The notes beneath the pieces are model-generated. The model did no database searches. It was given only the letters and a program-made list of their open reading frames with translations, and was not told where the DNA came from. DNA of 64,000 nt from Diplonema japonicum (taxonomy: Eukaryota > Protista > Euglenozoa: Diplonemea), in contig OZ025713.1 in the NCBI GenBank assembly GCA_964019335.1, forward strand, positions 186,001 to 250,000. Direction: 5' to 3'. Made by a program: the position numbers and the translations under genes. Shown in pieces: positions 10,415 through 58,308 of this stretch (position 1 is its first letter; each line of letters opens with the position of its first letter).

Positions 10415-10429
10415 ACAAAAGATGTAAAA

Positions 10430-17737: not shown

Positions 17738-18497
17738 TTTTTTTTTTTTTTTTTTTTTTTTTGGTTTACCTTTTTTTTTTCTTTCTTTTTTTTTTTTCCG
17801 GATAGCAAGATGAAAATATATAATTTTGAAAAAATCTTTCTTAAAAAAGTCTTTTGGAATTAATCCTGAAGTTCAGGGAAGAAGGGGGAAGAATGAGAGA
17901 GAAACAGAATAAGTAAATGAGAAGGGGGAAGAAGTGTTCAACTCGACGACATCTTCTTCTCCCCCTCACTCTTTTCCTTTTTTTTTTCTTTTTAAATTTG
18001 GGCAAACAAACTCTAAATAGAACAGTGGGTGGAAAAGAGGACCTGGCCGCTGCTTGCACGTACCAGGAGATACTAAAAGAAGAGAATGTAAAAAAAAAAT
18101 ATTCAAAAAGTACTTTGTTTGTGCACACAGTACAAATCCTGAGATAAGTACTGCATGTCACTACTCATTTTTGTTCTTACAAGAAAACTGAGCAATACTT
18201 GTCAAAATACAAAAAAAGAAAAAAGACAGAAAGAAAGAAAGAAAGAAAGAAAGTGGGTTATGTATCTTTGCCCAACCACTTGCACGCCTTTCATAAAAGG
18301 TTGGGCCAACAAAGAAAACATCCAAAACAAAAGAATATTTGATCTTTTTCTTTCCGAAAAGAAAAAGAAAGTGTAAATGAAAAGAGTAGGGGGGGGGAAG
18401 GGAGGAGAGAAAAAAAAAAAGAAAATACGGTATTCTCGAACTTAAAAATAAAGGGGGGGAGGAAGGAGAAGAAACAATCCCGTTTGTTAAAACAGTT

Positions 18498-21400
18498 TCA
18501 TTCCTTCTCAAGGTTTTCCGGTTCATCGTTATTAATGCGACCAGATAGTGGGAAGTCAGCTCGGTGTTTGTCAGCGCCATCGTCGTCAGTACCGTTCTCG
18601 AAATTGTCTAAGGTCCGTCGCTGAGCGCCAGTGGTCCCACCGTTGTTGTCATCGTTGGGTATAACTTCACCGTAAGAAACCTGCCAGTGGTCAAGCATTT
18701 CATCCTCATCGAAAGCTTTTTTCTTAATGACAGCCTTGCGGGGCTTACCGGAACGAAGATCGAGGACAATGGAGAAACGATTTTGCCTCGGATCGCGGGA
18801 TTCGTAATAGTCGTTCCAGTACCCAACGAGACAGGACTGTGTCAGCCCTACAGATGGCGTCCCCACTCCGCGCAACGCTTCACGTTGCAGTTTAGCGTAG
18901 CGGAGCCATTTTGTCCGCATTCTCTCGTTTAGAGTTTGCATCCACTGCTCCTGGTTTGTCATGAAGATCGACGGCTTCGCTTGTTTCCACTGCATGTTCA
19001 CGTACTTCGACACCTCGTCACACGTAACATCTCCAGAATTATCCTCATCAACCCTCGCGAAGATCTCCTCCTTCAACTGCTCCCCAATGTACCTTGCAAA
19101 GACAACATACACCACCATGTTGCACAGGAAAATGATCAAGGTTACGGCGAACCTCGCGCTGGACGACAGCTCTTCGAGGTACAATATGCCGATGTTCAAG
19201 GTTACCGTGATGCTGATTAGCGACAGGTTTTCGAGCCGCCACAGAATCGAGTATTTGAACGGTTTTAAAAAGATGTTTAGCAGCGCGAACACCGACATCA
19301 GCCACATGGCGCAGTACAGTTGATACCGTGCCTCTTGCGACATGAACACAACGATGAAGACCAAAAGCATCTTTCTGATCATGATGATCATCTCCCAGTA
19401 GTAACGCTTCTCACGGAACCCGGAGTACAAAAACCCGAGCGTCGACATCACTTCTTTCGATCGCAACGCGCCGCGCACCTTCCGAAGCTGGAGGTACCCG
19501 AAGAACGGCAGTCCAAACCCATACGTGATGAACAGCAGGAATGCCATGAACTGAAAAGTCGGATACGGCGACTCCGAGCAGTCCACCGCAGGGTCCTCGT
19601 CCAGAAACTTATGACACTTTCCCTCTTCAACGCATATTTCTTCGGTGCAGTTGAGCATCAAAGCGATCTCCTTCATCAGTGACGGGTAGATCAAGAAGAT
19701 GATCACAATGACCGACACCGTGTAGATATCGGTCAGTTTCAATGTTAGTTCGTAACCGGCCTCTACCAATGGGGACGCCTTTGGCTGTGGTTTCACCCGT
19801 TGGTGGTGGGAACGTTCGCCGAAGTGGTGCATCGATCGATCGCAAAGCTCGCAGTAGTGCGCGTTGCACAGCGGGCACATCCACACCGCGAAGTCGGAGT
19901 GGCAGAGGTCGCAATTCTCAATGACCTCCATTTTTCTGTCTAACTCGGCGACTCTTGCGAGCTTTTGCTCGTTCCGGTTGAACTCTTGTTCCAGCAGAAC
20001 CGCGGTGTCTTGGATGTCCTCTTCCCTGAGCTGAATCGTTCCGCGGCGTTCGTTCCCTGTCAGGCTCTCCCTTGCTCTTTTAGCAGTCTGGGGGTCGTTC
20101 TTGGCAGCGTCGGCGTAGCTGCCGTGATCCGTCAACCTCCGTTGTATCTCCGCCTCCGGGAACCCTCTGTCGACCCACCCTTGGATTTTATCGCCCATTC
20201 TGCGCAGCCTCGCAGCGGCGTAAATTTGCGGGTAGCTCACCATCTTCGAAAGCTCCAGGATGCTGAACACGGGGTGTCCTTTACCGTCGACCGGCACTTC
20301 AAGGAGCGAGTTCGCTGTGCGGATAGCAGCTGCTTCTTCTAACCATTGAAACTCGGCTTGGATGTACCACGACGGGACGGCTATCCTGGCGGTGTCGTCT
20401 CCCGCATGGCGTGCGACGGAGATCGTCGGGCGCAACCCGGTTATCCCCGATTTCGGTGTTCTTGGTGGTGTGATGGGATCTTCGGACGAGAAATACTCCG
20501 CGGTATTCCCTGTTACCGGGTCGGTTCGTAGGTACTTGAACACGGAGTCCTGTCCCGGTGTGCTCACCTTCTCGGCCTTCAACGAGTCCTCGATGACGGG
20601 CGTTGCAACGGCGAGGCAGTCGTTTTCGGAGTGTTCCTTGAAGTAATGATCCGCGTTGTTGGAGAACTTCTTCAGTTTAATCGCGGCCTTCCCCTTTGCG
20701 AACTCGCAGGAACCGTCGAAGTAAACGCTTGTGGTGGCCTCGCCGTCGTCGCCGCTCGGGAATGGCAGCATCGGGTGCTGCACCACCGGGTAGGGTGGAA
20801 GCGTGGACGTCGCGTACTTCCGTTTCTGAACGTCTCGTTCCCGTTGTTCTCTGTTCCCTGATTCGGAGATAGGGAAGAGCTCCGATACAACCTTCTCCAG
20901 AAACACCTTATTTCTCTTGGATTGGTTCACGCATTTCTTCTCGAAAGACGTGACTAAGTCATACCGTGCAAGCACGGAAATGAGCAGTTCCCCTCTGAAC
21001 AAGTGTTGCAGGACGGCTCTGTTCACCATATGCGACTCTATCTCGCAGGAGTACCATGTTCCCTTGAGAAACTCGATCATCTGATCGTCTGTTCCAAGCC
21101 TCCCCACTCCCGGGTTCGGGAACAATCGTTCAAGAACGCAGCAACGTTTGCACAACCAGCATCCGTGCGTTCCGGCGGTGATGTCGACCTCCCACAGAAT
21201 CTCCCCGTCCGACGGAGAGGTTATCACCCCATTCGAGCTGAAGGAAAGCCCTTGTATCTTCGTGGGTTGATATGTCTCCGAGGCGTGGGGGTACGCCGTC
21301 AACGCGGAAAGGCCGGTTGTACTGGGAATCTTCTTCGGGTCGATCTTCTTGCTGACCTCAAGGTTTAGTTTCAAGAGCTTTTTTTCAGAAGGATGCAGAC

Positions 21401-51400: not shown

Positions 51401-54400
51401 CTGAAGGCGTGGTGATGTCAATGGTGTAGTAAGCATCACAGGAACCGGCACACACCGCCACGGCAGTGTCACCTTGTGCGCAAACATGCTGGACGGGGGA
51501 AGTAATGACTGTGCTGCTGATGTACATGCTTGTATCGCTGGCGACAAACACCACCATATCAGCGGTGGTCCCAATACCAAAGTAGCAGGTGGTGGACACT
51601 TCTTTGAGAAGCGTCATGCTGTTGATGTTGTTGCCGAACGGAACTGAAGTGTTGATGACTAGATTCGACGCAGAATAGACATACACCGTCTGCGTTGAGA
51701 ACTCGTGAGCAACGAGGAGCCACGATCCGCATGCCGCAGCGCGAAAGACAGCACTGCCGACTGAAAAACTATGTGCCGTAGTGAGAGCCAATGAAGGGCT
51801 TATCCCTGCGTAAAACTGGTACTTATATATACTGCTGCCGGTCACTATGTAGCTCACCTCGCTGCCGTCAGACGTTGCAGCATACGTGGTGCCTGTTGTG
51901 GTGATGGACGACGTGTTGCTGCCTGCGCTGGTCACCGAGGTTATCTGCGAGTCGCTTGTTATATAAAAATACTGACCGGAGTCCAACACATAAATCGACG
52001 ACGTCATTCCAAGGTCTGTGCTGTTGCTTCCCGTTGCATTCAGGTCGGAAACCCACGCAGTAGTACCATCCAAGACAACCCCGGTGGTCCCGATGGCAGC
52101 CACACCAGTGATATTCGTGAAGCTCTCTGTGTTGAATAACGTGTACGTGGAATCAGTGGGAGGGCTGTACGGGGGCAGCACAGGCGGGTCCACCGGAGGT
52201 GCAACATAAACAGGAGTCGCGACGGGGGTGAAAGTCACGTTGATCCTGTCGAACGTGAATAGGCTGCTTCCAGAGGCAACGGCAAGCTTGGTGGATGACA
52301 ATGCACAACCGATTGTGTCATTTGCTTCAGGCAGCATGTGTGTGGAAACCAAGGTCGCAGCTGAAGGCGTGGTGATGTCAATGGTGTAGTAAGCATCACA
52401 GGAACCGGCACACACCGCCACGGCAGTGTCACCTTGTGCGCAAACATGCTGGACGGGGGAAGTAATGACTGTGCTGCTGATGTACATGCTTGTATCGCTG
52501 GCGACAAACACCACCATATCAGCGGTGGTCCCAATACCAAAGTAGCAGGTGGTGGACACTTCTTTGAGAAGCGTCATGCTGTTGATGTTGTTGCCGAACG
52601 GAACTGAAGTGTTGATGACTAGATTCGACGCAGAATAGACATACACCGTCTGCGTTGAGAACTCGTGAGCAACGAGGAGCCACGATCCGCATGCCGCAGC
52701 GCGAAAGACAGCACTGCCGACTGAAAAACTATGTGCCGTAGTGAGAGCCAATGAAGGGCTTATCCCTGCGTAAAACTGGTACTTATATATACTGCTGCCG
52801 GTCACTATGTAGCTCACCTCGCTGCCGTCAGACGTTGCAGCATACGTGGTGCCTGTTGTGGTGATGGACGACGTGTTGCTGCCTGCGCTGGTCACCGAGG
52901 TTATCTGCGAGTCGCTTGTTATATAAAAATACTGACCGGAGTCCAACACATAAATCGATGACGTCATTCCAAGGTCTGTGCTGTTGCTTCCCGTTGCATT
53001 CAGGTCGGAAACCCACGCAGTAGTACCATCCAGAACAATTGCAATGGTCCCGATGGCAGCAACACGGGTGATATTGGTACTGAAACTCTCTGTGTTGAAT
53101 AACGTGTACGTGGAATCAGTGGGAGGGCTGTACGGGGGCAGCACTGGCGGGTCAACCGGAGGGGAAAAAGGAGGTTGGACCGGGGTTGGCAAGCTACGCG
53201 CCCACCAGTATAACTGAGAGTTAACTCCGACAAAGTAAAACTCAGTCCCAACCACAGTACTGACTGGTGTAAGTGACGATGGGTACGAGAGGGTGAAACG
53301 ATCGGTGAGCGCTGCAGGGTCGCTCGCATTCCACGCCTCACCACTGCTGCACGGGGTGGGATCGCAGACTGTAACGAGCATGTCATACCCATATGCAATC
53401 TTCTGCTGTGAGGTAACGGGGTATAATGTGCCTAATGCTTTAGTGCCTCCGGTCACTGAGAACAGCTGGACACCAGATGACACGGTGGCTGCAAAATAGT
53501 ATGTTCCTCCCTGTTCTGTCATGTAGGTTATAGACGTAGGTGTCATCGATGTGAATTGGTCTGTCTGGGTGATGCCACTCGAAGCATTGTACACATTGAC
53601 GTACGGGCCGTTTCCGATAACCAAAACACTGCCATCGCTCGACACCGCGACCAGGACAGGCGACGTGAGGCCAACTGAGAGCAAAGTGTCGGATGCCAGC
53701 GTCTCCGCGTTCAATTTCTCAATGCTGACCGTGTTTACAACGAAGATGTAGTTGCTCGCGTAAGCAGCCACGTCGGGGGTGAAGGACAACCCGCTATACA
53801 TCAATATGCCTGCAGTATCCAAAACGTAAATAACTGGCGAACTGGCTAGGTTGATGAGTACCCTTCCAGGGGAGAGCGGTGTTATACCGAGTGAGGTCTG
53901 TCCTAGGGGGATGTTAGCATAAGTCGTAAGACTTGCCCCAGTCGGCACAACATATACCCAGACGTAATTCTGCGAGGCGACCCACAAGTAGTCCCCTGAT
54001 TGCACCATGCCAGTGACAAATGTTGGAAAGCCTCCGGTGCCCGTGTACGATAAATCAGTCCCAGTGGATGAAGTCGGCTGCGGTGTGGGCACAGGAGTCG
54101 GTTCTGTTGTTGCAGACGCGGTGGTGTAGAGATGCATCCTGCTCTGCGTGACGACGATGTAGTGGCTGTCTGTCGCGAAGCTCGACACAGTCTCGTTGTC
54201 GGAGTCAGGTATATCATAAACCCCACGTAACGACGGCCGTTCGTTAAACGTGACATCGATGACAACGAATTGAGAGCACGACCCATAGCACAAACCGTAC
54301 ACGTCTGTTCCAACCGTTCTCCATTCCCTGGTGGTTGCGGTGTTCCATGAAAACGAAAGCGATGACACAAGGGTGTAGGTGTACGGGGTCGGAACAATAT

Positions 54401-56747
54401 GGTACATGTACAGCACAGCTGACGACTTCGCCACGAAGAAATAATCATCTTGGTACCATGTCACGGCGTAATACCCTGATGTTGTGGTCAACAAGGATAA
54501 GCTTGTCGTGCTCACAATGTTGTAAAGTACCGTTCCCCCGCCACGTATACCAAATATAAGTGTAGAGCTGGACGCAGCAGCGAACACATCGCTGGTAGAC
54601 GTCATTGTTATCCCGGTGATGGCAACGCTCGACAGTGTAACACGAGACGCCGCATCTATTACAAAGATCGTGGAGGCCGTGATGTAGTAAAAGTAACCTC
54701 TTGGGTCGGCAACGAGCAGCAGCGCAGGGGAGCTGTCAATGTGGAACGCCGTTCCGTAGTAAGTATCGTCGATCACCGTGTGAACAAGTCCCCCTGCCGC
54801 ATCTGTGAACATGAACATCGACCCATTCGTGGCGACCTTTCCCGTTGCAAGAGCAAAGTTCGATGTGATATCGTACGTGGCGTTCAGGGTGTTGTTCGAC
54901 AGGTCCAAGCTAACAATGTTCCCCGCAGATGCCTTCGACGTTACCATATGTGCGACATCGCCCACCACAGCAAGCGTTGCATCCGTTAAAAAATAAGCAA
55001 CAGAGTCCTCCAAGATATACCCAGAATAAACCAGCCCAGCAGGGTCGAACGCAGGCGTTTCTGCAGGAGGCGGGACAGGCGTATCAGGAGCTGGCGTATT
55101 CGCATTATAATTAGTCCATCGATAATATGAAAGCACCTCGGATTGCGAGAAAATTGACAAGGCAGAACTCCCCAATGCCGCACCAACAACTTCGACCGAA
55201 TTGAAATAATAAGTTGATATCGTACTCAGCGTCAGGCCTGCTCCGGACCCGGATATGTGCATTTCAATGAAGTAACCGCAGGTTCCGGTGCACATGCATA
55301 CAAGCTTGGATCCGCTAACGTGGAGCGAGAAGGGTCCTATCGTCGTCATGACGCTCATCGTTGCGAACCCGCTAGACTGGACGTTCAGCCCTGACAGCGT
55401 GTCGTTGTCGTAAGACATCACAAAATCGTTTCCAGTATAGGCTGCAACGGAAATCACGGCGAACGAGGTGTCGGACGATTTGAACTGAGGGTCTGAAACA
55501 TTGCTGACATCCCAGAAATGCAGCCCGTCAAGATCGCCGACGAGCACCCAGCTGTCCGAAGCGGCTGCCACGGGGCTCGTGAGGTTCAGTGAATGCGCTA
55601 GTGTAGCCTTAACCGTCAGAGAATTCGATGCAATTGTCATCGTAATGAGGTCCGTCGCGGTGATGAGAAACAGCTTATCATAACTCGGAGCAGCCACAGT
55701 CATTGTAAGGACGACATCATTGGTAACGAACAACCTGTGGTTAATGATCCCAGTACTCTGATACGCGGTGACGTACCCCGAGTCCACGCCGTACGCCCAG
55801 TTCCCCGTCGTCAGCAGCAACTCTGGTGTGAGTGTGGCTGAATTACTACTTACAAAGACGGAATCGCTTGATGAGTAAGCCCGCAAACTACCGACGTAGA
55901 CGATAAAATTCGATGAAAAAACTGCACCCGCGGTAACGTTCCCATATGCAGATACATCCACCGTTCTGTTGCCGAAGAATTCAACCGCGCTGAGCGACTC
56001 CGCTTCGCGCTGAAAGACCGCTTTGTGAGCGCTGTGTCGTCCCGCCCCGCGCATCTCACGCGGCTTCACCGATCTGAACCGGTACTGTTTTTTAACACGC
56101 TGCCGTTTCTGTCTGCCGAGGGTTGTTGCATAGCGTTGCCCCGACATTGCGTTGGGCTGTGCGATGCAGGATCCGTTCGCGGAGCACATGGTGGTAGAAG
56201 GGTTGCACATGCAGTGCCCGCCCGTTAAAATAGTATTGTCAAGACACGTTCCGTTCAACGTTTGGTTTTGAACCTTTAAAGTGCAGACGCACGATCCATC
56301 GAGACATGGCCCCGACTTGTAGAAGGAAGGACTGAACGAGCAGCTAGCAGACATTGGATCACGAAGACAGTTTGGCGCAGTACATGAAGAGTCTGTACAG
56401 GTAGCTGGCGGGCCAGCATTCCAACCCATTGGAAAGATGAGGCCGTCTGTCGAAATTTGGTATCCACCGCAAAGAGGTTCACCACTACACAGTGACTTGA
56501 TACATTGAAGATTCGGGCCTGTTGTGGTGTAAGCAATAGTTGATTCCAGTAAGGCGCCGGTGGTTGGGTCGGCGAAGTCCAAGCAGAATGTTTCTCCTGG
56601 CCATATCCCGTTCTCGCCACACATTATGGGGCCTTCCTCGTTGAACCCGAGTCCCGTGCACTTTCCCTTGAACTCCACCCAGGTGTCGGCCGAGTTGCAT
56701 GTTTGAGCGACTACAAAGCCGGCCACGGTGATCACTACCGCAGCCAT
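18498..56747 (-). CDS. Giant 12,749-aa multi-domain cell-surface polytopic membrane protein
   Basis: 38,250 bp without a stop codon or homopolymer interruption. Hydrophobic N-terminus, many recognisable extracellular modules and about 9 C-terminal TM helices including LGFLYSGFREKRYYWEMIIMIRK. Confidence 0.93.
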   Translation of the reverse strand: MAAVVITVAGFVVAQTCNSADTWVEFKGKCTGLGFNEEGPIMCGENGIWPGETFCLDFADPTTGALLESTIAYTTTGPNLQCIKSLCSGEPLCGGYQISTDGLIFPMGWNAGPPATCTDSSCTAPNCLRDPMSASCSFSPSFYKSGPCLDGSCVCTLKVQNQTLNGTCLDNTILTGGHCMCNPSTTMCSANGSCIAQPNAMSGQRYATTLGRQKRQRVKKQYRFRSVKPREMRGAGRHSAHKAVFQREAESLSAVEFFGNRTVDVSAYGNVTAGAVFSSNFIVYVGSLRAYSSSDSVFVSSNSATLTPELLLTTGNWAYGVDSGYVTAYQSTGIINHRLFVTNDVVLTMTVAAPSYDKLFLITATDLITMTIASNSLTVKATLAHSLNLTSPVAAASDSWVLVGDLDGLHFWDVSNVSDPQFKSSDTSFAVISVAAYTGNDFVMSYDNDTLSGLNVQSSGFATMSVMTTIGPFSLHVSGSKLVCMCTGTCGYFIEMHISGSGAGLTLSTISTYYFNSVEVVGAALGSSALSIFSQSEVLSYYRWTNYNANTPAPDTPVPPPAETPAFDPAGLVYSGYILEDSVAYFLTDATLAVVGDVAHMVTSKASAGNIVSLDLSNNTLNATYDITSNFALATGKVATNGSMFMFTDAAGGLVHTVIDDTYYGTAFHIDSSPALLLVADPRGYFYYITASTIFVIDAASRVTLSSVAITGITMTSTSDVFAAASSSTLIFGIRGGGTVLYNIVSTTSLSLLTTTSGYYAVTWYQDDYFFVAKSSAVLYMYHIVPTPYTYTLVSSLSFSWNTATTREWRTVGTDVYGLCYGSCSQFVVIDVTFNERPSLRGVYDIPDSDNETVSSFATDSHYIVVTQSRMHLYTTASATTEPTPVPTPQPTSSTGTDLSYTGTGGFPTFVTGMVQSGDYLWVASQNYVWVYVVPTGASLTTYANIPLGQTSLGITPLSPGRVLINLASSPVIYVLDTAGILMYSGLSFTPDVAAYASNYIFVVNTVSIEKLNAETLASDTLLSVGLTSPVLVAVSSDGSVLVIGNGPYVNVYNASSGITQTDQFTSMTPTSITYMTEQGGTYYFAATVSSGVQLFSVTGGTKALGTLYPVTSQQKIAYGYDMLVTVCDPTPCSSGEAWNASDPAALTDRFTLSYPSSLTPVSTVVGTEFYFVGVNSQLYWWARSLPTPVQPPFSPPVDPPVLPPYSPPTDSTYTLFNTESFSTNITRVAAIGTIAIVLDGTTAWVSDLNATGSNSTDLGMTSSIYVLDSGQYFYITSDSQITSVTSAGSNTSSITTTGTTYAATSDGSEVSYIVTGSSIYKYQFYAGISPSLALTTAHSFSVGSAVFRAAACGSWLLVAHEFSTQTVYVYSASNLVINTSVPFGNNINSMTLLKEVSTTCYFGIGTTADMVVFVASDTSMYISSTVITSPVQHVCAQGDTAVAVCAGSCDAYYTIDITTPSAATLVSTHMLPEANDTIGCALSSTKLAVASGSSLFTFDRINVTFTPVATPVYVAPPVDPPVLPPYSPPTDSTYTLFNTESFTNITGVAAIGTTGVVLDGTTAWVSDLNATGSNSTDLGMTSSIYVLDSGQYFYITSDSQITSVTSAGSNTSSITTTGTTYAATSDGSEVSYIVTGSSIYKYQFYAGISPSLALTTAHSFSVGSAVFRAAACGSWLLVAHEFSTQTVYVYSASNLVINTSVPFGNNINSMTLLKEVSTTCYFGIGTTADMVVFVASDTSMYISSTVITSPVQHVCAQGDTAVAVCAGSCDAYYTIDITTPSAATLVSTHMLPAVNDTIGCALSSTKLAVASGSSLFTFDRSNVSFTPVATPVYFAPPVDPPVEPPTAPTLYGLSVTAAATTSNNIGFAVTSDTNTVYTTSSGLIRQFDVGTAPPVALVDIVAVPSADLVASNATHLFVHGSSNIYLMSGTVYTTSHYLGTAVVAMTVQGENLFLVTGSALLHFTVSSSFNLISVMSVSSVPHSIAASDDHVVLASSSGYVVYTIAGLTTFWSGSDIATDVAFVSSSTAVSGVSYFVFSGNAVFQLKVIEVHSSHGMVNTVNTFASLSGLSRVSVSSGLLVALCDACQTVYTYNVSDVSNIVDLGTFSASEIGGTAPGAAVLPESYLLLSATYLTRYDRTTYVGYPATPVDNSTAPVDNSTVPVDNSTAPVDNTTTTTILYGLSENGFVMTSGNGDLAVTSDTNMAYTTSAGMIRQFDVSTNPPTFLYSIAAVPMADLVSSNATHLFAHGTGTVYLMDGMIAVTSYFVGSSNALAMTVRGGNIYVATSTSLTHLTASSTAFNFITSAPGSFMPPVSIAASDDHVIVTDANGYSVYSVSGLSSFWSGSDVATDVAVIESSVSGNSYFALAGLGGSLPHHLKVIEVLGSFGMVNDLRTFTLDGLSHVSVSSGLLVALCDACQTVYTYNVSDVFNIVDLGSFSMLETGGTAAGAVVTDDMYLLLSMSQLTRYDRVTHTGYATVPVDPTPTGPFYGLQEIGNVMTSGNDGLAVTSDTNMAYTTSAGMIRQFDVSTNPPTFLYSIAAVPMADLVSSNATHLFAHGTGTVYLMDGMIAVTSYFVGSSNALAMTVRGGNIYVATSTSLTHLTASSTAFNFITSAPGSFMPPVSIAASDDHVIVTDANGYSVYSVSGLSSFWSGSDVATDVAVIESSVSGNSYFALAGLGGSLPHHLKVIEVLGSFGMVNDLRTFTLDGLSHVSVSSGLLVALCDACQTVYTYNVSDVFNIVDLGSFSMIETGGTAAGAVVTDDMYLLLSMSQLTRYDRVTHTGYATVPVDPTPTGPFYGLQETGNVMTSGNDGLAVTSDTNMAYTTSAGMIRQFDIGTDPPAVLVDIAAVPMADLVSSNATHLFAHGTGTVYLMDGMIAVTSYFVGSSNALAMTVRGGNIYVATSTSLTHLTASSTAFNFITSAPGSFMPPVSIAASDDHVIVTDANGYSVYSVSGLSSFWSGSDVATDVAVIESSVSGNSYFALAGLGGSLPHHLKVIEVLGSFGMVNDLRTFTLDGLSHVSVSSGLLVALCDACQTVYTYNVSDIYNIVDLGSFSMLETGGTAAGAVVTDDMYLLLSMSQLTRYDRVAYTGYATVPVDPTPTGPFYGLQETGNVMTSGNDGLAVTSDTNMAYTTSAGMIRQFDIGTNPPMLMVDIAAVPMADLVSSNETHLFAHGTGTVYLMDGMIAVTSYFVGSSNALAMTVRGGNIYVATSTSLTHLTASSTAFNFITSAPGSFMPPVSIAASDDHVIVTDANGYSVYSVSGLSSFWSGSDVATDVAVIESSVSGNSYFALAGLGGSLPHHLKVIEVLGSFGMVNDLRTFTLDGLSHVSVSSGLLVALCDACQTVYTYNVSDIYNIVDLGSFSMLETGGTAAGAVVTDDMYLLLSMSQLTRYDRVAYTGYATVPVDPTPTGPFYGLQETGNVMTSGNDGLAVMSDTNMAYTTSAGMIRQFDIGTDPPTVLVDIAAVPMADLVSSNATHLFAIGGTTLYLMDGMAILASYNVNSGVFTFTVRGNNIYAVTENSVLQFTASTVGFNVVANVSGSFMPPVSIAASDDHVIVSDQSGLHIYSLPGLHFFISGIDIVKEIAVIETSSSSGNSYFALAGLGGSLPHHLKVIEVLGTGGTQDLRTFTLDGLSHVSVSSGLLVALCDACQTVYTYNVSDIYNIVDLGSFSMLETGGTAAGAVVTDDMYLLLSMSQLTRYDRVTHTGYGMQTNTPGGAGFSLISTITSNGGPVIDMAMAGGALFVIEGSNITRYDTNLSPPASVGTLTPAGQPGHIVTNGVEFFVSIGVSLQKVDSSGGLMSSVIVGEVANTLCTNGAEIFYISGNTVHVIDAGAMFLVSNQTLYSPISAAAYCATSSSWLIVGDATAGLQKYQLFAGMPPMFSGFDSTFATCLEFLRTENGNSYFVMGDGMEMKIYEVSNDPSIFWTFVSSVITGPLHHLAVHDNAVLGLCGGLGCGTFYFMETSTITAPSTVTTLSLMNMVDHPMTGFLTSMHYAVAIGNNLEFYEWLSTPSPGTSPGGGCSSFLTPDLILASSVGSVGGMPCNAETPNVPMCNNDVWCPVTSGPTEWLLVRFPEVSEVVSFVLKSNLNTASVSSLTLEYSNDTSTWTTGYTGPVTPPLSCPSMSYPLVPSIFARYVRIANMMGTPDVSLSVQFYGCSSNSPGDDCANGACPSDQTCFDRDNVANGMGYSCSCIPPLAGRADNGHAVCEHVCSQAFPHSGNPPMPVSPGMQNTYCCATPTCDTTANPIGIPTRDYACLDNGMCADYQWLNPVSTGLCSDPRWAGICQLTCNTCAATVDDCSTMSCPDGCTDSDGMLNGMGAECTCTANSDMPQCRSMRGSFNCADCPVTCGMCIGSCSNAALCQGVTPFCRDLDGVLDRDGVYCSETPVDDCLTNPCTSSQTCSDPDGVANNQYFCSCLEPLIGSSVSEPASCMSTCSPEYPVYDGMANMCCDIPPPLPGTCIPCNYTSCFDNTPSSCMDAAGCSNMVCSGFYSAGPVFDYRVAYACPVLCGTCGVTDCSVNPCTKEMLCHDDDGVKDGNYRCSCRWPAVNVNGICEAPCKASHPVPRIGIMGRSICCSSDGTECIPCPSDICGSRAETDHPQCGTDASNSSWCDNANVSLPDGWFTGTQLCPVTCVASVVLDTLKCPVSYPYSSANGSSCCPYPNANECPYSCENKTCEDHGCVDTSLCVRWGISQCNARLNALTGTTDYPPTYKVRDLCPMKCMMCLPDDCKNGTRRCRGDTDSTQTCTDTDALFDRNFMCECTGAYSGVGTSAPAQCNFAYCGLSGVWQAEWNDLRCDDTRLRSTLRIYSNGSVETLFDTQGPRGSLGKTPNGSVILMWGNHTEIFTDISVVPLVLHGMHSFRGQRCGEMVLTRFQEITDGTRCTSVGSTGVCPPEHPQSTGLRGTCESTDSLGSILCPEWPCDNGVLPHIPSEPYTLVGQGKCRDGYDTINGWTIYLEASSDVVLSETRCRGFCTEMRENCVGYELTRIGGQGGRLLCTVFDPDGRATLGWTWTAVGGTGGGGIPTSIVETTDLSSCFRKDSAYVPAAELQATANGCCSTPIETVLVQSDVSTCEAECAQNTRCIAVERSLSTSECILIEANVVGLEPSCLDKSCVFKTSNVEMKPNTTSNCCFVNSVQLKDMLASFSCGTDAACSEACLADSTCTAYEVQTDGTACQECWLFRSPLPNSFTRDACVSQSQCYVKEPAPYQFAHGMVQCEDGKLPIEDETECYAAADALHIFYSKPTSPLNTDEYPAGCWNDQSNNRVYFNTAGGDTSMITCPAVMQRCHVICKTAPAPPTISGWETCVHSNTASFVGPYFPAIGNASTGYCYSACVGYQFFSFQFDAEGKSVCWCMDTFPASSPTADECKQCAATVYPGGPLVSCIYRRRASGCSIELGAGRCREGDNLIVASLLECEASCVSDGTCTHMSWSQQDASCIITHGPCEHEPSLRYFLYERNVCPDDTPIQKPEKPVAQAWPFQKSIEGGGTCNARPISPEESQRAGWCGYPATNSVCKQSLDDYSVGPFVKDGVCLCKLEDTAVNLGECSEIDGLCKPHTPQPTPAPTPAPTPRPLENTAGIVVGEFLGEGYCVDRDGRRFTEYALVLTGDIGPSYLGNTYWENHCRDLALSIAKTNCFVRGVAFQGAAPPMEGPKCILSIKAGETLTFTVDTDGLWEAVRDGASDEYPSQGDGTADLICFLYIGGRCTEADECDGCDTTCTVVEGKCRDDAGGLCSSAVCGAVELFRQVCDAGTSEGLGLTNKLETEWLDPAVTEYITVVSSSDGYAHQYEYVFVTDKESCEAAGYAPVVTSKQCQAALCALADVNYLADLPVPDPANRTAGQIPTGCSARCVSDTAQCEFLASWFELTTTEPSSCITAGKKNVRCVCLRDLGPPVVYNETCKANTEEEFIIQTFGPGCGSTPIKLAIGGTLSVSEIVDVTSPDECRAAVCQLYKTQILNGTLPTWGSYPVYDAGEARSSYTGKLESGYKTSQTGGVTDPASIGDERWQGGCSVVLGSDGDITRPFRVWFHPENQCPGHNTSSPTAASCTLDNGCTLLPDGNCTAIREGFGLCTSVLPCICKKKAAPIVVKMKTVEVSLAFIVSEEEFNNMLGDNPTPAAKAQLKALFDDITSALSVGLPMDAVVSIASVRYHFSESETGPYILWEELQRKLQQQQGAYLEVVSEITTPETTAADVAAQVTETVTSSATIGSFPVIAELIAVATQEEQVVTTGEEFIVNQNCPIATDFWGSGEVKMCNPCAGNTDPSTPCGGTDSTEAGLEIQVNVTEGMVKNVVFNSYSVSDVDSAAVTLTVKKRVVSGKAILGLMVGDEPDMDLTNAMMSDGVTRFHCRGHAGSGGGTSACTINACGPFVVGLKALGGDATVSLSICYPSGAARECPCDKVASDGKVHGKCVLAKPAKTLEDASGILVEVPSVTCECDENFGVRQTSGELDCTQCEAGRFPVPGSQLWDLNAEVVSYLQTSLAAPACSLECALCGDISCGEYDPETERCSCLGELTGPTCENPCARGKYGTFCNETFAQLTYMVPKLFNPSGDGGGGTTSKWLPPPWNVAPNSDASVQLQGIQSGSVVKMTLRAMKTTHGETATSTTAYPAKTTLAVDAAYYGPAPSSWSDQNAEHKLHVLLDRSVYVYKYTNSKFVLETSSLITEYYAVMNLDACSDPLIFGTGYNKDYDAAIYYKPTTTDPMVEVVGWLIFMKGDKICMATGADGRFDKTRALENGFNSVHSMFQVPWTSLHSETMLDERVNAFSPKFNTSCRWSDGLPQLCMDAGKADATWGAVGVYDDSLVMLTDNDVARKLPGLNTLCCTASTDCNCGIGIAAAATNEHTRLGPQAEAAFQLYPLNDMFVSTTTRSLFDDASFDPESFRPVALASSTQGAPTLVFDEFEVRVLNGLNRFKAVTGELLEGLGIPSKLVIEQSSTATINAAANVITGSRSLSFTVTVQDEKGVDTPLENDAIIPSLEECGQPFSTAVEQAITTLNPILQDSSSAPLREYLLDENDCKPATKATLVGPDANGVTTIAGSKTTVFQFRKLAVSHDGIYRVVFKHAKSSASVRSALIQVVPTDCNAADLWTGAVECQRDCTDTTVNPGWNGLQCGLDISSNKNWVQLEMEVAGYIAMEATLAMVQTCCSGHGLCCVGQQTCSDNYVDQGNDESRCTCIETLANGYWDQRQNCTSCKTGYGGDACTVFDGQYTREETIGGSKTAGGRDVVVASVHPETQVLVNVTSISGDADFALSFVSCPGQSSIRDLSRLEVNQIAVPCSGRGECSFDYNTGKAQCSCEDGYHGSDCSSVCCSLHGSCTGDNSVCTCFDNVARGRWSPSGTYCSGSGCTYKGGSETFNTAECLYVKDGKYRSCNAEPYAIPSNTSARVWVGWRDIPVPTDGKLEYAAILVNEATNHCRRKQQVHIYATHRLGSVNGSMPSANDTRTVNGSAADDYSPCNAVLPSTQTVECGPDASLDMNKCICNAGKKCLLGRCLSSQEVNMCDERGVQGTGCEADWPMQEEQDGTCKCTTTQDISDEMGRTSCFEGVCLPVLRSLGCSWEAERYHGRVYDEAGVDEELRWTGVAPEEDQQFFYEVVSYVQEESVLGRSRTIDITDWLGRATKYMNVPTMGLSFVFVTESDGEDDCQPAATDHKLVLKHSGHRQPSRLFLAMETPRLSQHQHGQPYLSLFTADALTSLAPWLSDDASGARALRRYDKTGSSRPDGSACFGCPCPKELFFQDPIDFTQIGEYMFFLAVSDWEGVADEGEHPCNPVHRSSTIFQGSREVFYTKGLPWSKEGSTFGQVTSSSLRIGSPVYPDFHSSLSDTERKREMYGMRVYTRAKELTKMTVSQQGGAKEEVLVLISTDGGGDTVSDTSVQTQISSDIYPQVWKMSLNSATGLPDQAEIATPGVRFPSYLTKVALPTQDALFFLGEQVPASTPNSFDYTPLGDSYGYGGRTASHQYLIATKLSVYVSFGAVGDATVLVGAADVLPHCHHVQGHPGFVYYNNAVYFYFDSMSGEGLKLYKWPLGSNKANVVVLHTNTGVLSPYIPPLSVGYAPIIESGGRLVLSMTPKNTTQQQHGCVELQGCNGNTLLHTYQKYFECMDSQRGNVELWWYEDDQHFDLISDDNGDDTASDPIWMHPAEDGSGFFWVGHDEGTSTTGIFLTNSSDHPMPQFSSQVQQTLWYTRTNAQQWESTAVWRTNAPVKISRLETWDDTTLFWAYDPSELNLTYESATLDPNSSCYPPGRIQGVLSRYDNADYYTKVMTGVNIPAYDGCKRNLYKIAKRAGGMWDVEEVVEGGSEDGLGVPNKHCCNRDIIGAFYDSNQTWPTNPALQAGRSCLVSDNITNCRPEPHQVPALPKGCLSCYRNNTQTTNFVYSNYMAPDSLKYSTETLWTTPHAGWWFAGFQSIWKDTNSSTFTGEELYRPGGFAWREHWPRTMGAWEEKTVALRNDCEDCKPGYYGESCNKACPMPTCEGLSRDACRDPSCTWEVATEECTANYCSGYGCFDGIFGNGTCDCDMSTMGIACDQAGPFSFAEYVVSGDAGVRIISTQCETNGACSPTVEQCQETAYFCGANNDEPCCGRGPEPMKVTSTEYAFLAFTGVELDLQGRSEYDIDSMTLRLWEANGRCENASSEGVTLSFYVVPSLSTSSWMVTRHGRSFEANLSGPTAVEVLQSKVLVATETVSATQEGHELRVSISHADLLDAYGVQQNGSSAVGAGGSNVNAIDITFAIIGESGCVAMFTPREYRSDWAAVCSVDNGKPGCGSVGLPSSNTSTYVKEDVNHASRLLLAFKDVSSNAEIGGMLRTEPRSFLADVDTTPDVSLMRGSVSNAVEDALFVETSCIALTKEAVERCSVMSPIDSGFLVVRILGFSLEATYNLSVGWTPTGQFEATQRLGSCKQGSRTGHWDGAFCSECRYRFGGSGCNQYSPEVCGDNNCAADSGECKAYPVMENLYERCNCKEGLFGMECDKTCPNGCSGHGICSEQGECLCTQNADNGFWSSGDCGICAEGYFHANCSVPCGCNSNFGKCNTSDSEGACVTDGDCTGNRVGKFCEDCRPGFYAYGSTCDKVCNETTCVNGVCSVDGDCECENTEGWYANPAGLCAIFCNETTCNGHGDCPAAGASVTVPCTCHGSVTQGFWDPTSECGTCAEAYWGQDCTLECLCNLHGTCNRESGACICYDDDIRGHFQGDACQQCAQGYSGDCTVRETTVGVPQLGKAYDLVAPGTTEKDAGRTVKTGALFYLTSMELLARIDGVNYQSGSVADEEAALVESETAAAKGDSGATEFLFAASGSRDPVTNTVPVEMWSKGLSTSTDFRGSYDRRLGVHTLYSSGSIAGERVLGMFQDRRFLYFVVGDDTDSYLGRVWAVFTPKCNFCLLPVGSDNTLHGIGGLDGSSNPFTGDSTCSAGCAEGQQVIVPSSTKPDGVAGVVVQVELDSSGVSRLWVRTEHMTPCEGTQCHASDQSLHLYSAEEVRPLVTVAWWENPSDGADSSEVTSWAFVSEVHTCFAIVKDTDNSAQVTYYLRSMRTDLTNELFLNGSYLLRAFREVQSMSVDASESRSPFALLLGVAKNGVSLLQKIFLPTPEEPTFRQVVDLVPSVCLLYNCLRFEGVQYLTRSLSVQTDSGMFKSDISTALLFVETEVVVDALSGLTDTVFAVQRLDLANLKEPSVLPNVEHPWCAKFETRDTCEAARCNWIQERCVRIMVDILKQTEGRQGIGGFAMDDKGLLYYSVGAKTAGSPSKVFKIDALTLKTRQERTMGYGNSLNEIEVVVEASMDRARRALFVLHHMQKTAISVLNAYDVTAITPNVSDAPMAGTNITVTGDGFSTLGGRFTPKCMIGNELYNATFTHGENGVVGMVCHAAVPEKGYSECNWISLEVAINEADLRWTETKTPARRVDTPLILGLGTAGSPGNWVHPYASVEDLPTTVNTITSDQKLSSIEIDKDSKTLRIAGPVKDSFGGTHERLIQTTPSGPYNEEVVVTVKGAGFFESPFAKCVVNGEARPATFLTTVKMLCLQPVFEKPFETAVEVTMDGQIYSTDAKVYYGIGRPASIEAFVLCDEDPSDPKACLTVPRKPSANLVVLNDVAVVFKDELGRFVGSVWVGPVGTAEIKPPKNFVFTANSTLTATPTNGAAVFSYLATEQPLASNYVFTVTYTETTSGVLFETQVSLTIVGGVPHAAKLDVKPPSYSNNREVLSPQPVVQVVDPANNPVEQVVWKVECTLDRSTLPKELVDPVTSGSLIKLSEATASLDPATISFPFKNLRISTTLVGRSAEFKQISSVAYERLYFTIIFTVIYANGTRVPGLNQMQSTLRMVDCSSSYVGNTKLSWIEPEEQPAGTSLPFYIKGWKYTDIGTSGDYYCVMRDADTGLYKTAVKAVFVDSCTLECLPPQEYRLIAGMDLVQPALCCGADCIDGSVCQNTGSVGYNETKLKLFYYHKYVGDSAAMRVWNLNTSLGVTAPEFHPYSAALAQQTNVAQYASVNVSLSNGVRFFHSGDFANGQFDRTDFNFQLLMYSDHVVNRQTVIRADTWTTLAGVQLGTLDDWERKATVQGLRGANMDTRLRVAIVDGVVGLNKWLGSFTAVHKQLLLEETGKKLSADKVTVTLEVSPVATFKDDTGVHVASLNPIRVGAIIRVDGKRSSSNRFTHTFNNSYAEFPEVEMEMPAKGDYVINLNPSNKQLGTVSLFITVLEGLPHHVEFDKEGQIGWTGGKDGLPKSTLTNKRELTTQPRLRLLDVARNTLTALPTAHVIHARVWSVSPWPRCRPQPCTNCTEDLTLPGMWGVEDRTDKGDCPWNTPDPSISGGGLPDPTFGSNGIAEFGSTSRTASLNIWAKDEGSTYTVTFHFYGPGLENFGYNLPLLTSPSIPASFCEPNCNDRKICAMLPRKFGQSTTASALGEKLIIFGDYYNFAQSGEQDSSLRVMLTHRIKQVDFPCVLPAKLRDPCSVTINVPTCHFYCLNYFTAADYTDRDRELCCSTNFKEDQTPCTATGVGRHAQILQAAVSGLATALTSPASTSLAVATSCSATGTCANALANAATTTGPPKIGPPAQLGVHESHILTGDHRVKTSANNVASFVIRITSKDESGNDLLERDTARRRVRIYLEKQVSSQDNGWVTGDCTPVSYKPNTCLPHSITNQKLCSNSETECVRIVNTTGHDISDEAEMVNGVANFNISLQSPKEADYGIQVEDITPAAWSGGTTRLPSCTGPHVVNGVDVGTGPNEARGRLPYPDSVICAENTGRRSVYAFRVVRGEPFKLNWVSTPTTVIDNANTQNTQYILQVTDFAGNVLDRTDIKDANGNQLTIQVQVTKRVPQLWDNSTGPILFRRRGEDYTDKRIRELQDLGCFFSVVGAADSTALLGSGRDTTQIVFSFERFKLWRGMQCDLEWKVVDTTANPAQNELARSLNANTNPPIEATVRAQDCCANTETTKCALFSYSFEFGCIDHINDRLKSGPQNPSTGLGSAFIGVDKSNPYGCLYECGTCETGMDCYGNVTITTQSEYYREPNTYKGFECKPGNCVGGNLGFGLGELGQPSALNETDETRAAMQCEVGNKGPLCGVCIHEPSADAPNGYARNADNCAKCPSPGVNYLLLGVSALVMLLVILVMIVVNLQTGEVVQETPKVSVMIKMLMNHIQVSALSGDFAVKWGSLMEDTFDSQSKTTPTSNVVSVSCATQASYYTTFIGWMVLPVLIIVLPGIVILIIQFKRKVSGGAEEELKIPEANLECQSVYHWAYDWCVDDRDKRLLRRRLEEFASLHPSEKKLLKLNLEVSKKIDPKKIPSTTGLSALTAYPHASETYQPTKIQGLSFSSNGVITSPSDGEILWEVDITAGTHGCWLCKRCCVLERLFPNPGVGRLGTDDQMIEFLKGTWYSCEIESHMVNRAVLQHLFRGELLISVLARYDLVTSFEKKCVNQSKRNKVFLEKVVSELFPISESGNREQRERDVQKRKYATSTLPPYPVVQHPMLPFPSGDDGEATTSVYFDGSCEFAKGKAAIKLKKFSNNADHYFKEHSENDCLAVATPVIEDSLKAEKVSTPGQDSVFKYLRTDPVTGNTAEYFSSEDPITPPRTPKSGITGLRPTISVARHAGDDTARIAVPSWYIQAEFQWLEEAAAIRTANSLLEVPVDGKGHPVFSILELSKMVSYPQIYAAARLRRMGDKIQGWVDRGFPEAEIQRRLTDHGSYADAAKNDPQTAKRARESLTGNERRGTIQLREEDIQDTAVLLEQEFNRNEQKLARVAELDRKMEVIENCDLCHSDFAVWMCPLCNAHYCELCDRSMHHFGERSHHQRVKPQPKASPLVEAGYELTLKLTDIYTVSVIVIIFLIYPSLMKEIALMLNCTEEICVEEGKCHKFLDEDPAVDCSESPYPTFQFMAFLLFITYGFGLPFFGYLQLRKVRGALRSKEVMSTLGFLYSGFREKRYYWEMIIMIRKMLLVFIVVFMSQEARYQLYCAMWLMSVFALLNIFLKPFKYSILWRLENLSLISITVTLNIGILYLEELSSSARFAVTLIIFLCNMVVYVVFARYIGEQLKEEIFARVDEDNSGDVTCDEVSKYVNMQWKQAKPSIFMTNQEQWMQTLNERMRTKWLRYAKLQREALRGVGTPSVGLTQSCLVGYWNDYYESRDPRQNRFSIVLDLRSGKPRKAVIKKKAFDEDEMLDHWQVSYGEVIPNDDNNGGTTGAQRRTLDNFENGTDDDGADKHRADFPLSGRINNDEPENLEKE
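19014..19049 (-). other. EF-hand loop in the C-terminal tail of the giant protein
   Basis: DEDNSGDVTCDE fits the 12-residue DxDxxGxVxxxE pattern. Confidence 0.7.
19090..21903 (-). other. About 9-TM TRP/Flc(PF06011)-like membrane domain split by a long loop
   Basis: Hydrophobic helices from VNYLLLGVSALVMLL to AVTLIIFLCNMVVYVVF; motifs IKMLMNHIQ, FLIYPSL, GFLYSGF..YYWE..RK, KPF and LENLSL. Confidence 0.7.
19798..19913 (-). other. B-box-type zinc finger inside the large loop of the membrane domain
   Basis: CDLC-x8-CPLC-x4-CELCDRSMH-x6-HHQR. Confidence 0.8.
44248..44658 (-). other. F5/8 type C (discoidin) domain in the giant protein
   Basis: WCP...EWLLVRF...VSSLTLEYSND..TW...PSIFARYVRI...LSVQFYGC. 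Confidence 0.8.
45600..51195 (-). repeat. Coding tandem repeat with a 930-bp (310-aa) period: four near-identical units, one mosaic unit and one diverged unit
   Basis: AGYTGTGACATCGACAACAA recurs at 45634, 46561, 47491, 48421 and 49351; a diverged homologue lies at about 50330-51195. Confidence 0.95.
50221..50305 (-). repeat. 21-bp coding minisatellite (PVDNSTA-like x4), a linker with N-glycosylation sequons
   Basis: TPVDNSTAPVDNSTVPVDNSTAPVDNTTTT. Confidence 0.85.
51226..53160 (-). repeat. Coding tandem duplication with a period of about 960 bp (320 aa), two near-identical copies
   Basis: 51241 onward matches 52201 onward almost base for base; a 3-nt indel lies near the unit start. Confidence 0.95.
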
Positions 56748-57432: not shown

Positions 57433-58308
57433 TCACGAAATTATACAGATAATGTTGTTTCGCAGAACGTACCGAGAAGAAGCGTGGGAAGGCCGGTGAA
57501 CGATCTGCGGGTGGCTGGGCTCCACAGAAGTGGTATGGGATTGGTTGCTCTGCTGAGTAACAGACGACTGAGGGCCGGCCTGATACGCCCCAGACCCATA
57601 TTCATGATTAACACTTGCAGAAGTCCGTGATTGAAGGGAACTAAACGAAACCACCTCCTGCTGGGCTTCTTCATGGTGACTAGAATTTTGCGACGCACGA
57701 GAACTGGGGGTCGAGTCAATATCCCGACAGGACGACCCTTCGTCAGAAGCGTCCTTTGCTACGATAATCGTGTTCTGTAGAAGCTCAGGCTGCCCGAGCT
57801 TGCTGTCGTGTTGCGGGTAGTGCTCAGCTTGGAAGGCCACAAGAGATTTGCTCTGCTCGGCAAGCATTTCTGTCAGCTCTTTCAACGCATTCTCTTGAGA
57901 CCGCATCTTGTACTTTTGTTGGTTGATTTGCTCTTCGCTTTTCTGAAGCTGTTCACCGAGTCGTTCTCTCGCGGTGACCTGCAGCTCTATCCGTTTACCT
58001 TGATCGTCCACCACTTCCATTAACCTGTCTATTTGGTTCTTCTTCTCTTGGATGGCTCTGTCAACAATCTCCCCATCTTCATTGGGGCTTGCCTGTGTCT
58101 TGTCAGATACGGTTCCTACTTTTGCCATTTCGCGTACTGCTGTCAGTGTGGCCGATTTCTGGTGTAGTCTGACGTGTGTTTTTTCGAGTTCCGCCCTCCG
58201 CATCTTTATGTCCCTCTTCGTGTCGCTTATCTCGTCTTCCTTTCCCCTTAGCTTGGATGCGAGGTCCAGTTCCTGCGAGTTGTTGTTCGGCATGTTGGAC
58301 TGTGACAT
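57433..58308 (-). CDS. Hypothetical coiled-coil protein with an S/Q-rich disordered tail (3' end may be spliced)
   Basis: Heptad-like E/K/Q/L-rich region; first ATG at 58308 (MSQSNMP); donor-like GTACGT at 57472-57467. Confidence 0.7.
   Translation of the reverse strand: MSQSNMPNNNSQELDLASKLRGKEDEISDTKRDIKMRRAELEKTHVRLHQKSATLTAVREMAKVGTVSDKTQASPNEDGEIVDRAIQEKKNQIDRLMEVVDDQGKRIELQVTARERLGEQLQKSEEQINQQKYKMRSQENALKELTEMLAEQSKSLVAFQAEHYPQHDSKLGQPELLQNTIIVAKDASDEGSSCRDIDSTPSSRASQNSSHHEEAQQEVVSFSSLQSRTSASVNHEYGSGAYQAGPQSSVTQQSNQSHTTSVEPSHPQIVHRPSHASSRYVLRNNIICIIS

Follow-up and report, generated by a model that had tools for sequence, protein, structure and literature searches.

Can an open reading frame (ORF) of 38.25 kb be a single gene, and if so, what kind of protein does it encode? 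The question is raised by a 64,000-nucleotide stretch of the Diplonema japonicum genome (contig OZ025713.1, C66 in our numbering, positions 186001-250000), which we call the window. The ORF listing of the window contains one frame at 18498..56747 on the minus strand that starts with ATG and encodes 12,749 amino acids (aa) plus a stop. The original prediction, made from the sequence alone, saw in it a receptor with a very large modular ectodomain on a TRP-like membrane domain. We find that the gene is genuine and that its product appears, from sequence comparison, to be an enlarged version of the 6,000-8,000-aa proteins that form a conserved diplonemid family. Its fuller interpretation, as a giant diplonemid surface protein with a ligand-binding ectodomain on a possibly Ca2+-permeable membrane module related to Pfam family PF06011, is one that we hold with about as much confidence as doubt.

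A single intron-less gene of 38.25 kb

The translation of the giant ORF contains a single stop, at its end, just as the original prediction had stated. At about 3 stop codons in 64, the chance that 12,749 successive codons stay open is, by our own arithmetic, roughly e^-600, so a frame of this length is effectively impossible by chance. Window coordinates of its parts are given below by the rule that residues a to b occupy (56747-3b+1)..(56747-3(a-1)), always on the minus strand.

Between window positions 40500 and 46500, 96-97% of sampled words were present in five sequencing runs, which come from two of the three studies listed. We compared short-read contigs from two runs with positions 40501-46500. 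A 27,555-nt contig from run X1 (study P1) matches window positions ~18228-45782 with 0 differences, and a 27,864-nt contig from run X3 (study P2) matches ~17770-45633, again with 0 differences; both extend from a point slightly beyond the stop codon as far as the first of a set of near-identical repeats. About 27 kb of the frame is thus reproduced exactly by two independent studies. Inside the repeats the short-read contigs shatter, and depth there is about four times that of unique sequence (~750-1,100 compared with 240 in X1, and 63-70 compared with 15.6 in X3), in agreement with an assembly that has four near-identical copies. In several runs, contigs break off at poly(A) and (TTTC)n tracts. 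We considered the contig ends at ~18228 and ~17770 as possible transcript ends and rejected this, because they coincide with such tracts.

The ORF could in principle be an artefact, produced by a mis-join or by expansion of a repeat, or it could be a dead frame that is not expressed. Near-identical 930-bp repeats, in which short-read contigs shatter, are a classic site of assembly error; there is no RNA run among the runs that we found, and none of the protein libraries that we searched contains the giant protein. Even so, we regard an artefact or dead frame as very improbable. Apart from the length of the open frame, the exact reproduction of 27 kb and a repeat depth that agrees with the assembly, both flanks of the insert described below are homologous to one Flectonema protein, every residue that is nearly invariant in the membrane module is intact, and the 12 repeated units of the ectodomain are diverged paralogs (18-98% identity) rather than copies of one unit. 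The intron-less 38.25-kb gene is genuine.

The giant protein belongs to a diplonemid family

To find relatives, we searched the last 1,150 aa of the protein against 1.84 billion cluster representatives. The family comprises 4,844 representatives at E ≤ 1e-3 (1,160 at E ≤ 1e-10), and its shared core consists of helices 4-9 of the membrane module together with a second stretch over helices 1-3. The module is mostly C-terminal in proteins of 1,000-8,000 aa, which bears out the statement in the original prediction that modules of this type occur behind large ectodomains in protists. Named members come from the diplonemids Diplonema papillatum, D. ambulator and Flectonema neradi, the kinetoplastid Papus ankaliazontas, and the euglenid Entosiphon sulcatum.

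Four relatives (P0001-P0004) are colinear with the giant protein between aa ~4,780 and ~12,700, with 31-37% identity in the main alignments and 26-30% in shorter pieces. P0001 is a 7,961-aa protein in ENA; the other three are from D. ambulator, from D. papillatum (annotated as 'Teneurin-m, partial'; 6,632 aa) and from Flectonema (P0004). Relatives of 5,799-7,777 aa are single transcriptome contigs: two from D. ambulator (EP01059_P034027/P034029; 5,799 and 6,477 aa) and one from F. neradi (EP01060_P025404, or P0004; 7,777 aa). In addition, the D. papillatum protein KAJ9454236.1, annotated as 'Laminin subunit alpha, partial' (P0005; 6,030 aa), matches the whole C-terminal 1,094 aa. The diplonemid relatives share with the giant protein the juxtamembrane Cys-rich region, helices 1-3, the ~600-aa loop, the B-box, helices 4-9 and the EF-hand, and they are colinear with it over ~5,900-7,900 residues. 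For full-length orthologs the outcome is divided: colinear proteins exist in all three diplonemids, but none of them has the insert of ~4,600 aa that distinguishes the giant protein.

The position of the insert is fixed by P0004. The giant protein begins with a hydrophobic leader (aa 1-15) and a Cys-rich cap, which together make up aa 1-200 (56148..56747) and contain 19 Cys residues. The cap is homologous to the N-terminus of P0004 (31% identity over aa 1-181), after which the match jumps to aa 4782 of the giant protein. We conclude that aa ~200-4,780 are an in-frame insertion specific to the lineage of the giant gene and, because cap and body are homologous to single proteins elsewhere, that the insert lies inside one gene. 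At its other end the P0004 match extends no further than aa 12101 and thus does not reach the B-box and helices 4-9, though the ORF is labelled complete; assembly truncation may explain this, or P0004 may be an alternative isoform. The plan of the family is a Cys-rich cap, a body of ~7,000 aa with EGF-like, laminin-EGF-like, TIG and unassigned parts, and a nine-helix PF06011-like module. Between cap and body, the ~4,600-residue insert of the giant protein adds twelve propeller-sized units, a discoidin-like domain and EGF/ShK-like modules.

The genome of D. japonicum itself (a 62.5-Mb assembly in 132 contigs) contains at least 23 paralogs of the six-helix core. Several of them end very long open frames, among them one of 8,691 aa (C57, core at 129839-130564) and others of 4,243 aa (C34), 3,772 aa (C87), 3,469 aa (C76) and 3,169 aa (C94). 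The claim that no characterised protein has this architecture was therefore overstated in its suggestion of novelty, as colinear relatives of 5,800-8,000 aa and many paralogs exist, but it is correct in that none of them is characterised. We found no paper on the family in the literature on diplonemid giant proteins, on Diplonema teneurin or laminin, or on PF06011 in protists.

The database names of the relatives derive from EGF-like repeats only, and we reject both. A teneurin has type II orientation, EGF repeats, an NHL propeller, a YD shell and a toxin-like C-terminus. Only EGF-like motifs and a sub-threshold NHL match (18.9 bits, with a Pfam cut-off of 20) are present in the giant protein; there is no YD/RHS match, and the C-terminus is the nine-helix module instead. 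Of the LN domain, LE repeats, coiled coil and LG domains of a laminin, only LE-like cysteine motifs were seen, and there is no match to Laminin_N, Laminin_EGF or Laminin_G.

Twelve propeller-sized units and a variable loop

The largest part of the insert is an array of 12 paralogous units of ~300 aa with Pro-rich linkers between them (aa 250-4064; 44556..56000), detected by self-comparison and alignment. About 12 propeller-sized units had been predicted, and the number is exactly 12. All 12 units can be aligned and have two invariant Cys residues (CxxC-like), with identities to a reference unit that range from 18% to 98%. Two of them form a pair with a period of 320 aa (94-99% identity), and four form a set with a period of 310 aa (94-100% identity in protein and 95-98% in DNA). 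The latter correspond to four tandem copies of 930 bp (aa 2180-3420; 46488..50210), recognised by repeat comparison and by their contig depth. The repeats have a lower GC content (0.49-0.52) than the unique part of the ectodomain (0.55). Among the four copies, 10 of the 20 non-synonymous codons fall within unit codons 40-50. These codons form a variable loop in otherwise homogenised propellers, and the 930-bp tandem repeats are still amplifying and being homogenised.

We modelled one unit with AlphaFold, using an alignment that consisted of the 12 paralogous units only. The model has 28 strands arranged as seven four-stranded blades (pTM 0.71, mean pLDDT 68.6). A Foldseek search with it gave at least 500 matches in the Protein Data Bank (PDB) at E ≤ 0.001 (best E-value 9e-9, TM 0.5-0.59), and the matches listed are all propellers or propeller-containing chains, including BamB, WD40 proteins, DDB1 and the YWTD propeller of LDLR. 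The modelled unit is thus predicted to be a seven-bladed beta-propeller. In a protein-language-model Atlas, the clusters nearest to the unit are bacterial LVIVD-repeat propellers (PF08309; score 0.93), though recognition of the unit was low (1770). Blade motifs such as LHFWDVSNVSDP do resemble the LVIVD motif when read from the sequence. We did not adopt the LVIVD assignment, which is a lead from the Atlas confirmed by neither Pfam nor profile search: none of the 12 units matches PF08309 even at E ≤ 10, and a profile of the 12 units has no relatives among proteins of 171-544 aa. Neither was the unit found in giant proteins of 2,750-8,750 aa (a search that did not cover proteins of 545-2,749 aa or above 8,750 aa), and there are no further copies in the rest of the D. 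japonicum genome.

Directly before the propellers lies a polybasic stretch (RQKRQRVKK...; aa ~205-245, with the basic run at ~211-245; 56013..56135). Like the leader and the cap, it had been predicted and is present in the sequence, and it is a possible site of kexin/furin-type processing. If the precursor is cut, for example at RQKRQR by a kexin/furin-type subtilase, or if the mRNA is processed internally, then there would be several mature products and the 12,749-aa chain would never act as one polypeptide. The polybasic stretch does sit exactly at the border of cap and propellers, a Peptidase_S8 gene is located directly downstream in the same gene array, and cleavage is known from other giant receptors, polycystin-1 and Notch among them. 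However, in relatives that lack the insert the equivalent position holds a Pro-rich linker rather than a polybasic site, and cleaved fragments often stay associated, so this explanation overlaps in part with that of a single surface protein. We consider it improbable that the chain never acts as a single polypeptide.

The rest of the ectodomain

To identify further domains, we ran Pfam on the whole protein as pieces of 4,500 aa and of 1,000 aa, and searched all three thirds of it against sequences in the PDB. The array is followed by a discoidin-like (F5/8 type C) domain at aa 4065-4151 (44295..44555), which is borderline: PF00754 scores 28.4 bits on the 1,000-aa piece and 26.4 bits on the 4,500-aa piece, around a cut-off of 28.2, and the PDB match is to the C2 domain of factor VIII (E-value of 0.015). 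The discoidin domain of the original prediction is thus a candidate. Next comes a Cys-rich region (aa ~4165-4790; 42378..44255) with five EGF-like motifs that alternate with ShK-like motifs of the form C...CP.TCG.C. Further on, laminin/teneurin-type EGF-like repeats occupy aa ~8920-9235 (29043..29990), with 34-37% identity among internal repeats. The EGF/ShK and laminin-EGF runs that had been predicted can be seen only as cysteine motifs, and Pfam matches to them reach only E-values of 0.006-0.2.

The conserved body of the ectodomain, which is the part colinear with the diplonemid relatives (aa ~4782-11600; 21948..42404), is mostly without Pfam or PDB matches. Its clearest domain is an IPT/TIG domain at aa 9998-10070 (26538..26756), where PF01833 scores 33.4 bits (cut-off 20.9), in agreement with the original prediction. 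Pfam also finds a second, weak TIG domain at aa ~9828-9881, one weak EGF_2 match and one very weak PAN_4 match. The PAN_4 match is all that could be recovered of a predicted PAN/WSC module, WSC being without support, and a predicted SEA-like module finds no support in the Pfam or PDB searches. In the PDB searches, only factor VIII C2 and a Jagged EGF domain were hit, both weakly. We attribute matches to FTR_C, DDT, Bee_toxin, Colipase and similar Pfam families to chance.

B-box and EF-hand on a nine-helix membrane module

The original prediction placed about nine transmembrane helices, a B-box and an EF-hand at the C-terminal end, and all three are recovered. We modelled aa 11600-12749 with AlphaFold, using an alignment of 57 family sequences. 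Together with a hydropathy scan, the model gives nine helices, and the juxtamembrane part with helices 1-3 and the block of helices 4-9 are both modelled at pLDDT 85-98. The Cys-rich juxtamembrane part and helices 1-3 (aa ~11550-11737; 21537..22100) form the second conserved stretch of the family, with the helices at aa 11613-11638, 11650-11668 and 11706-11737. Helices 4-9 (aa 12338-12363, 12395-12423, 12451-12468, 12473-12494, 12500-12524 and 12529-12566) contain the GFLY..YYWE..RK region and make up the PF06011-like core, which is also identified by homology (aa 12338-12566; 19050..19736). Residues that are nearly invariant in the family, D, E, Q, W and P among them, are all kept in the giant protein.

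Helices 3 and 4 are separated by a loop of ~600 aa (aa 11738-12337; 19737..21536), mostly of low pLDDT and conserved in the diplonemid relatives. A B-box zinc finger lies at the end of this loop, directly before helix 4 (aa 12276-12324; 19776..19922). It has the ligand pattern C-x2-C...C-x2-C...C-x2-C...H (aa ~12280-12311), and its model matches the B-boxes of CONSTANS and COL2 with a Foldseek probability of 1.00; against the COL2 B-box, VIA gives Z 9.2 and rmsd 1.7 Å over 49 residues. The Pfam match (E-value of 0.0023) is below the cut-off, at 18.4 vs 27 bits. Ligand pattern and predicted fold together confirm the B-box, and its position directly before helix 4 is kept in about 25-30 of the closest relatives, including those from Papus and Entosiphon. 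Directly after helix 9 there is a single EF-hand (aa 12556-12590; 18978..19082), supported by sequence, model and conservation. Its canonical 12-residue loop, DEDNSGDVTCDE (D12567-E12578), has D at positions 1 and 3, S/D at 5, G at 6, a hydrophobic residue at 8 and E at 12, and is flanked by helices on both sides in the model, which together with its conservation in the closest relatives confirms it. Pfam scores it below the cut-off (15 vs 25 bits), and it is a single hand, not one of a pair. The protein ends in a predicted cytoplasmic tail (aa 12591-12749; 18501..18977) that AlphaFold predicts to be partly helical, with low pLDDT at its end.

With nine spans, we infer a topology with the N-terminus outside and the C-terminus inside the cell, which would make the TM3-TM4 loop cytoplasmic. 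The Cys-rich loops (between helices 2 and 3, and between helices 4 and 5, the latter with an NCT sequon) then fall on the predicted outer side with the ectodomain, while the B-box loop, the GFLY..YYWE segment and the EF-hand fall on the predicted inner side. This parity requires that the amphipathic helix at aa 11650-11668 spans the membrane. We compared the membrane-module model with known structures using Foldseek and VIA-align. The B-box aside, the matches were helical-bundle noise with Z ≤ 8.2: partial matches to ZnT, the transmembrane parts of Cys-loop receptors, TMEM120 and connexins are within the noise range of the tool, and we reject these as the fold.

A divergent relative of PF06011 proteins

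Is the membrane module a member of PF06011, as its resemblance to the TRP-like/Flc/Pkd2 group had suggested? By its own score it is not: the giant protein matches PF06011 with 13.6 bits (E-value of 0.03), under the cut-off of 28.5, and the match covers aa 12430-12551 on profile positions 272-395 of 426. The kinship appears through intermediates. Nine of 20 relatives match PF06011, the best with an E-value of 5.1e-8, and the Atlas cluster nearest to the module is 42% PF06011. A paralog at C7:19472-20305, which is 49% identical to the core of the giant protein (E-value of 5e-90), reaches 28.2 bits alone and 32.8 when neighbouring matches are counted, and is marked as passing the cut-off. Using hhalign, a comparison of the family alignment with two more distant PF06011-positive genes of the D. 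japonicum genome did not reach significance (E 0.025 with one, in the correct register, and E 0.3 with the other). On these sequence comparisons, we conclude that the module represents a divergent subfamily of the PF06011 superfamily, linked to it via intermediates and not a member by the Pfam threshold. Elsewhere on C7 there is a tandem cluster of near-identical genes above the PF06011 cut-off (L001, L002 and L004, at 603221-603640, 613126-613533 and 621255-621653, in frames of 884-1,118 aa), which belongs to a different subfamily from the module of the giant gene.

The fungal PF06011 proteins (Pkd2 of S. pombe, Flc1-3 of S. cerevisiae, Flc1 of C. neoformans and TrpR of A. nidulans) resemble the giant protein in having a multi-helix module, with the N-out/C-in orientation that is predicted for the giant protein. 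The GFLY..YYWE..RK region aligns with the family profile, though only the C-terminal third of the profile is matched. The differences are large: the fungal proteins carry a small ML-like N-terminal domain in place of an ectodomain of 11,600 aa, and they have neither the 600-aa B-box loop nor an EF-hand. No Pfam scan of the giant protein found a match to this ML-like domain (TRP_N).

The name 'TRP' of PF06011, the name 'Pkd2' of its fission-yeast member, and the C-terminal EF-hand, which PKD2 also has, might suggest a true homolog of polycystin-1 or TRP channels, with a voltage-gated-like six-helix pore and a PKD1-type ectodomain. We find this scarcely credible. There is no Pfam match in the giant protein to PKD_channel, PKD, REJ, GPS, PLAT or ion-transport families, and the model has nine helices, rather than 6 or 11. 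No TRP/PKD2 six-helix pore fold rose above noise in Foldseek or VIA-align, a weak negative since the model is long (1,150 aa); TRPA1 and CNG channels appeared in the fold search only as noise (E > 0.5, TM 0.06-0.08), and the fold is not among the top VIA rows. From the Pfam name no homology to canonical TRP or polycystin channels should be concluded. The likeness to polycystin-1 that had been predicted, and equally that to ADGRV1, is one of functional concept only: a huge modular ectodomain on a multi-pass part, with possible coupling to Ca2+. They have no common domain set with the giant protein (no PKD, REJ, GAIN/GPS, PLAT or 7TM), and the model of its membrane module differs from theirs. 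PKD1 has 4,303 aa and ADGRV1 ~6,300 aa, so the giant protein is about three times and twice as long, respectively.

Genomic neighborhood

The gene lies in a uniformly oriented region. All 11 of the ORFs of ≥300 aa in the window that are not antisense to the giant ORF are on the minus strand, and their products are common types of eukaryotic protein: a nucleotide cyclase, a fucosyltransferase, a cNMP-binding protein, two kinases, a subtilase and a sulfatase. This gene order is compatible with a euglenozoan polycistron-like array. The subtilase (Peptidase_S8) gene is at 14453-17737 on the minus strand, directly downstream of the giant ORF; it and the polybasic stretch after the cap are possibly a protease-substrate pair. 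A long poly(A) tract at 17740-17800 is located just upstream of the ATG of this next gene, and the 3' flank of the giant ORF contains a (TTTC)n microsatellite at 18225-18260. On the upstream side, a 304-aa ORF (57433-58347, minus strand) has no Pfam match at E ≤ 0.001. Within the giant ORF there are two antisense ORFs of 340-358 aa (29539-30561 and 41209-42285, plus strand), which are most likely chance frames because they have GTG starts and lie in GC-rich coding sequence.

A possible tethered sensor, and what the family means

Our functional reading builds on the gene, its architecture, its homology relations and the folds of three of its modules. If the protein has the surface location, ligand binding and ion permeation that we infer, then its long multivalent ectodomain would bind extracellular ligands, surfaces or prey, and load or ligand engagement would be passed on to the membrane module. 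By analogy with fission-yeast Pkd2, the module might then let Ca2+ through on membrane stretch. The B-box, in a TM3-TM4 loop predicted to be cytoplasmic, may mediate clustering or partner binding, and the EF-hand just after the last helix could give Ca2+ feedback. In its most specific form, the proposal is a tether-gated sensor, in which pull on a twelve-propeller ectodomain bound to prey, substrate or matrix opens an Flc/Pkd2-type Ca2+-permeable module that is tuned by B-box clustering and EF-hand feedback. We offer this form as speculation and consider it unlikely.

Background for the analogy comes from fungi. Reconstituted S. pombe Pkd2, a PF06011 protein with N-out/C-in topology, permeates Ca2+ on membrane stretch, and Pkd2 mutants have lower Ca2+ (PMC9727806). 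The C. neoformans Flc1 and A. nidulans TrpR proteins affect Ca2+ homeostasis (PMC9600462, PMC8618638).

Several points weigh against a ligand-binding, Ca2+-permeable surface protein. Channel activity has been shown only for a fungal PF06011 member that lacks both the B-box loop and a giant ectodomain (PMC9727806), and we found no evidence of Ca2+-channel function for the giant protein or any relative from protists. The model of the membrane module matches no solved channel in Foldseek or VIA-align, the PF06011 score of the giant protein is below the Pfam cut-off, and the hhalign comparisons are not significant. Most of the ectodomain has no binding domain that Pfam or the PDB sequence search could recognise. 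At the level of the gene, the copy number of the 930-bp repeat rests on the assembly and is unresolvable by short reads, and we found no transcript evidence for the gene, the runs found being of unknown type and none recorded as RNA.

The main rival is that the protein is an adhesin or glycocalyx component in which the PF06011-like module serves only as an anchor, or in sorting or quality control, and does not conduct. As would be expected of a generic anchor, the module is found at the end of thousands of large Cys-rich proteins that otherwise have nothing in common, such as those with Ephrin_rec_like ectodomains, and its model is without a known channel-fold match. The S. cerevisiae Flc proteins, which belong to this Pfam family, were first described as flavin carriers and as ER proteins, rather than as plasma-membrane channels (PMC9600462). 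On the other hand, nine helices, nearly invariant polar and charged residues, a conserved B-box and an EF-hand exceed the needs of an anchor, and the fungal Pkd2 protein is Ca2+-permeable on stretch. We give this rival real weight and think it less likely than not.

Few groups of marine heterotrophic protists are as diverse and abundant as diplonemids, and to our knowledge hardly anything has been learned about the ways in which they sense prey and particles or attach to these. Our analysis indicates that they carry a conserved family of surface proteins of 6,000-13,000 aa, which end in a membrane module of the Flc/Pkd2 type, one that thousands of large ectodomains in protists also have. Members of this family have been in public databases already, unstudied and mislabelled 'teneurin' or 'laminin'. 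What is new in the giant gene is the insert of ~4,600 aa with propeller, discoidin, EGF and ShK modules, which brings the total to 12,749 aa, and one lineage is actively amplifying the propeller array with its variable loop. At this length the protein may be among the largest predicted multi-pass membrane proteins. The membrane module, with a confident model and no match to a solved structure, is a good target for cryo-electron microscopy and for a test of whether PF06011 proteins are real channels. If the tether-gated sensor is true, a class of 'adhesion-gated' channels would extend across the protists, its thousands of members differing in their ectodomains, and the poorly understood PF06011 family would become approachable for the first time from the side of the ligand.

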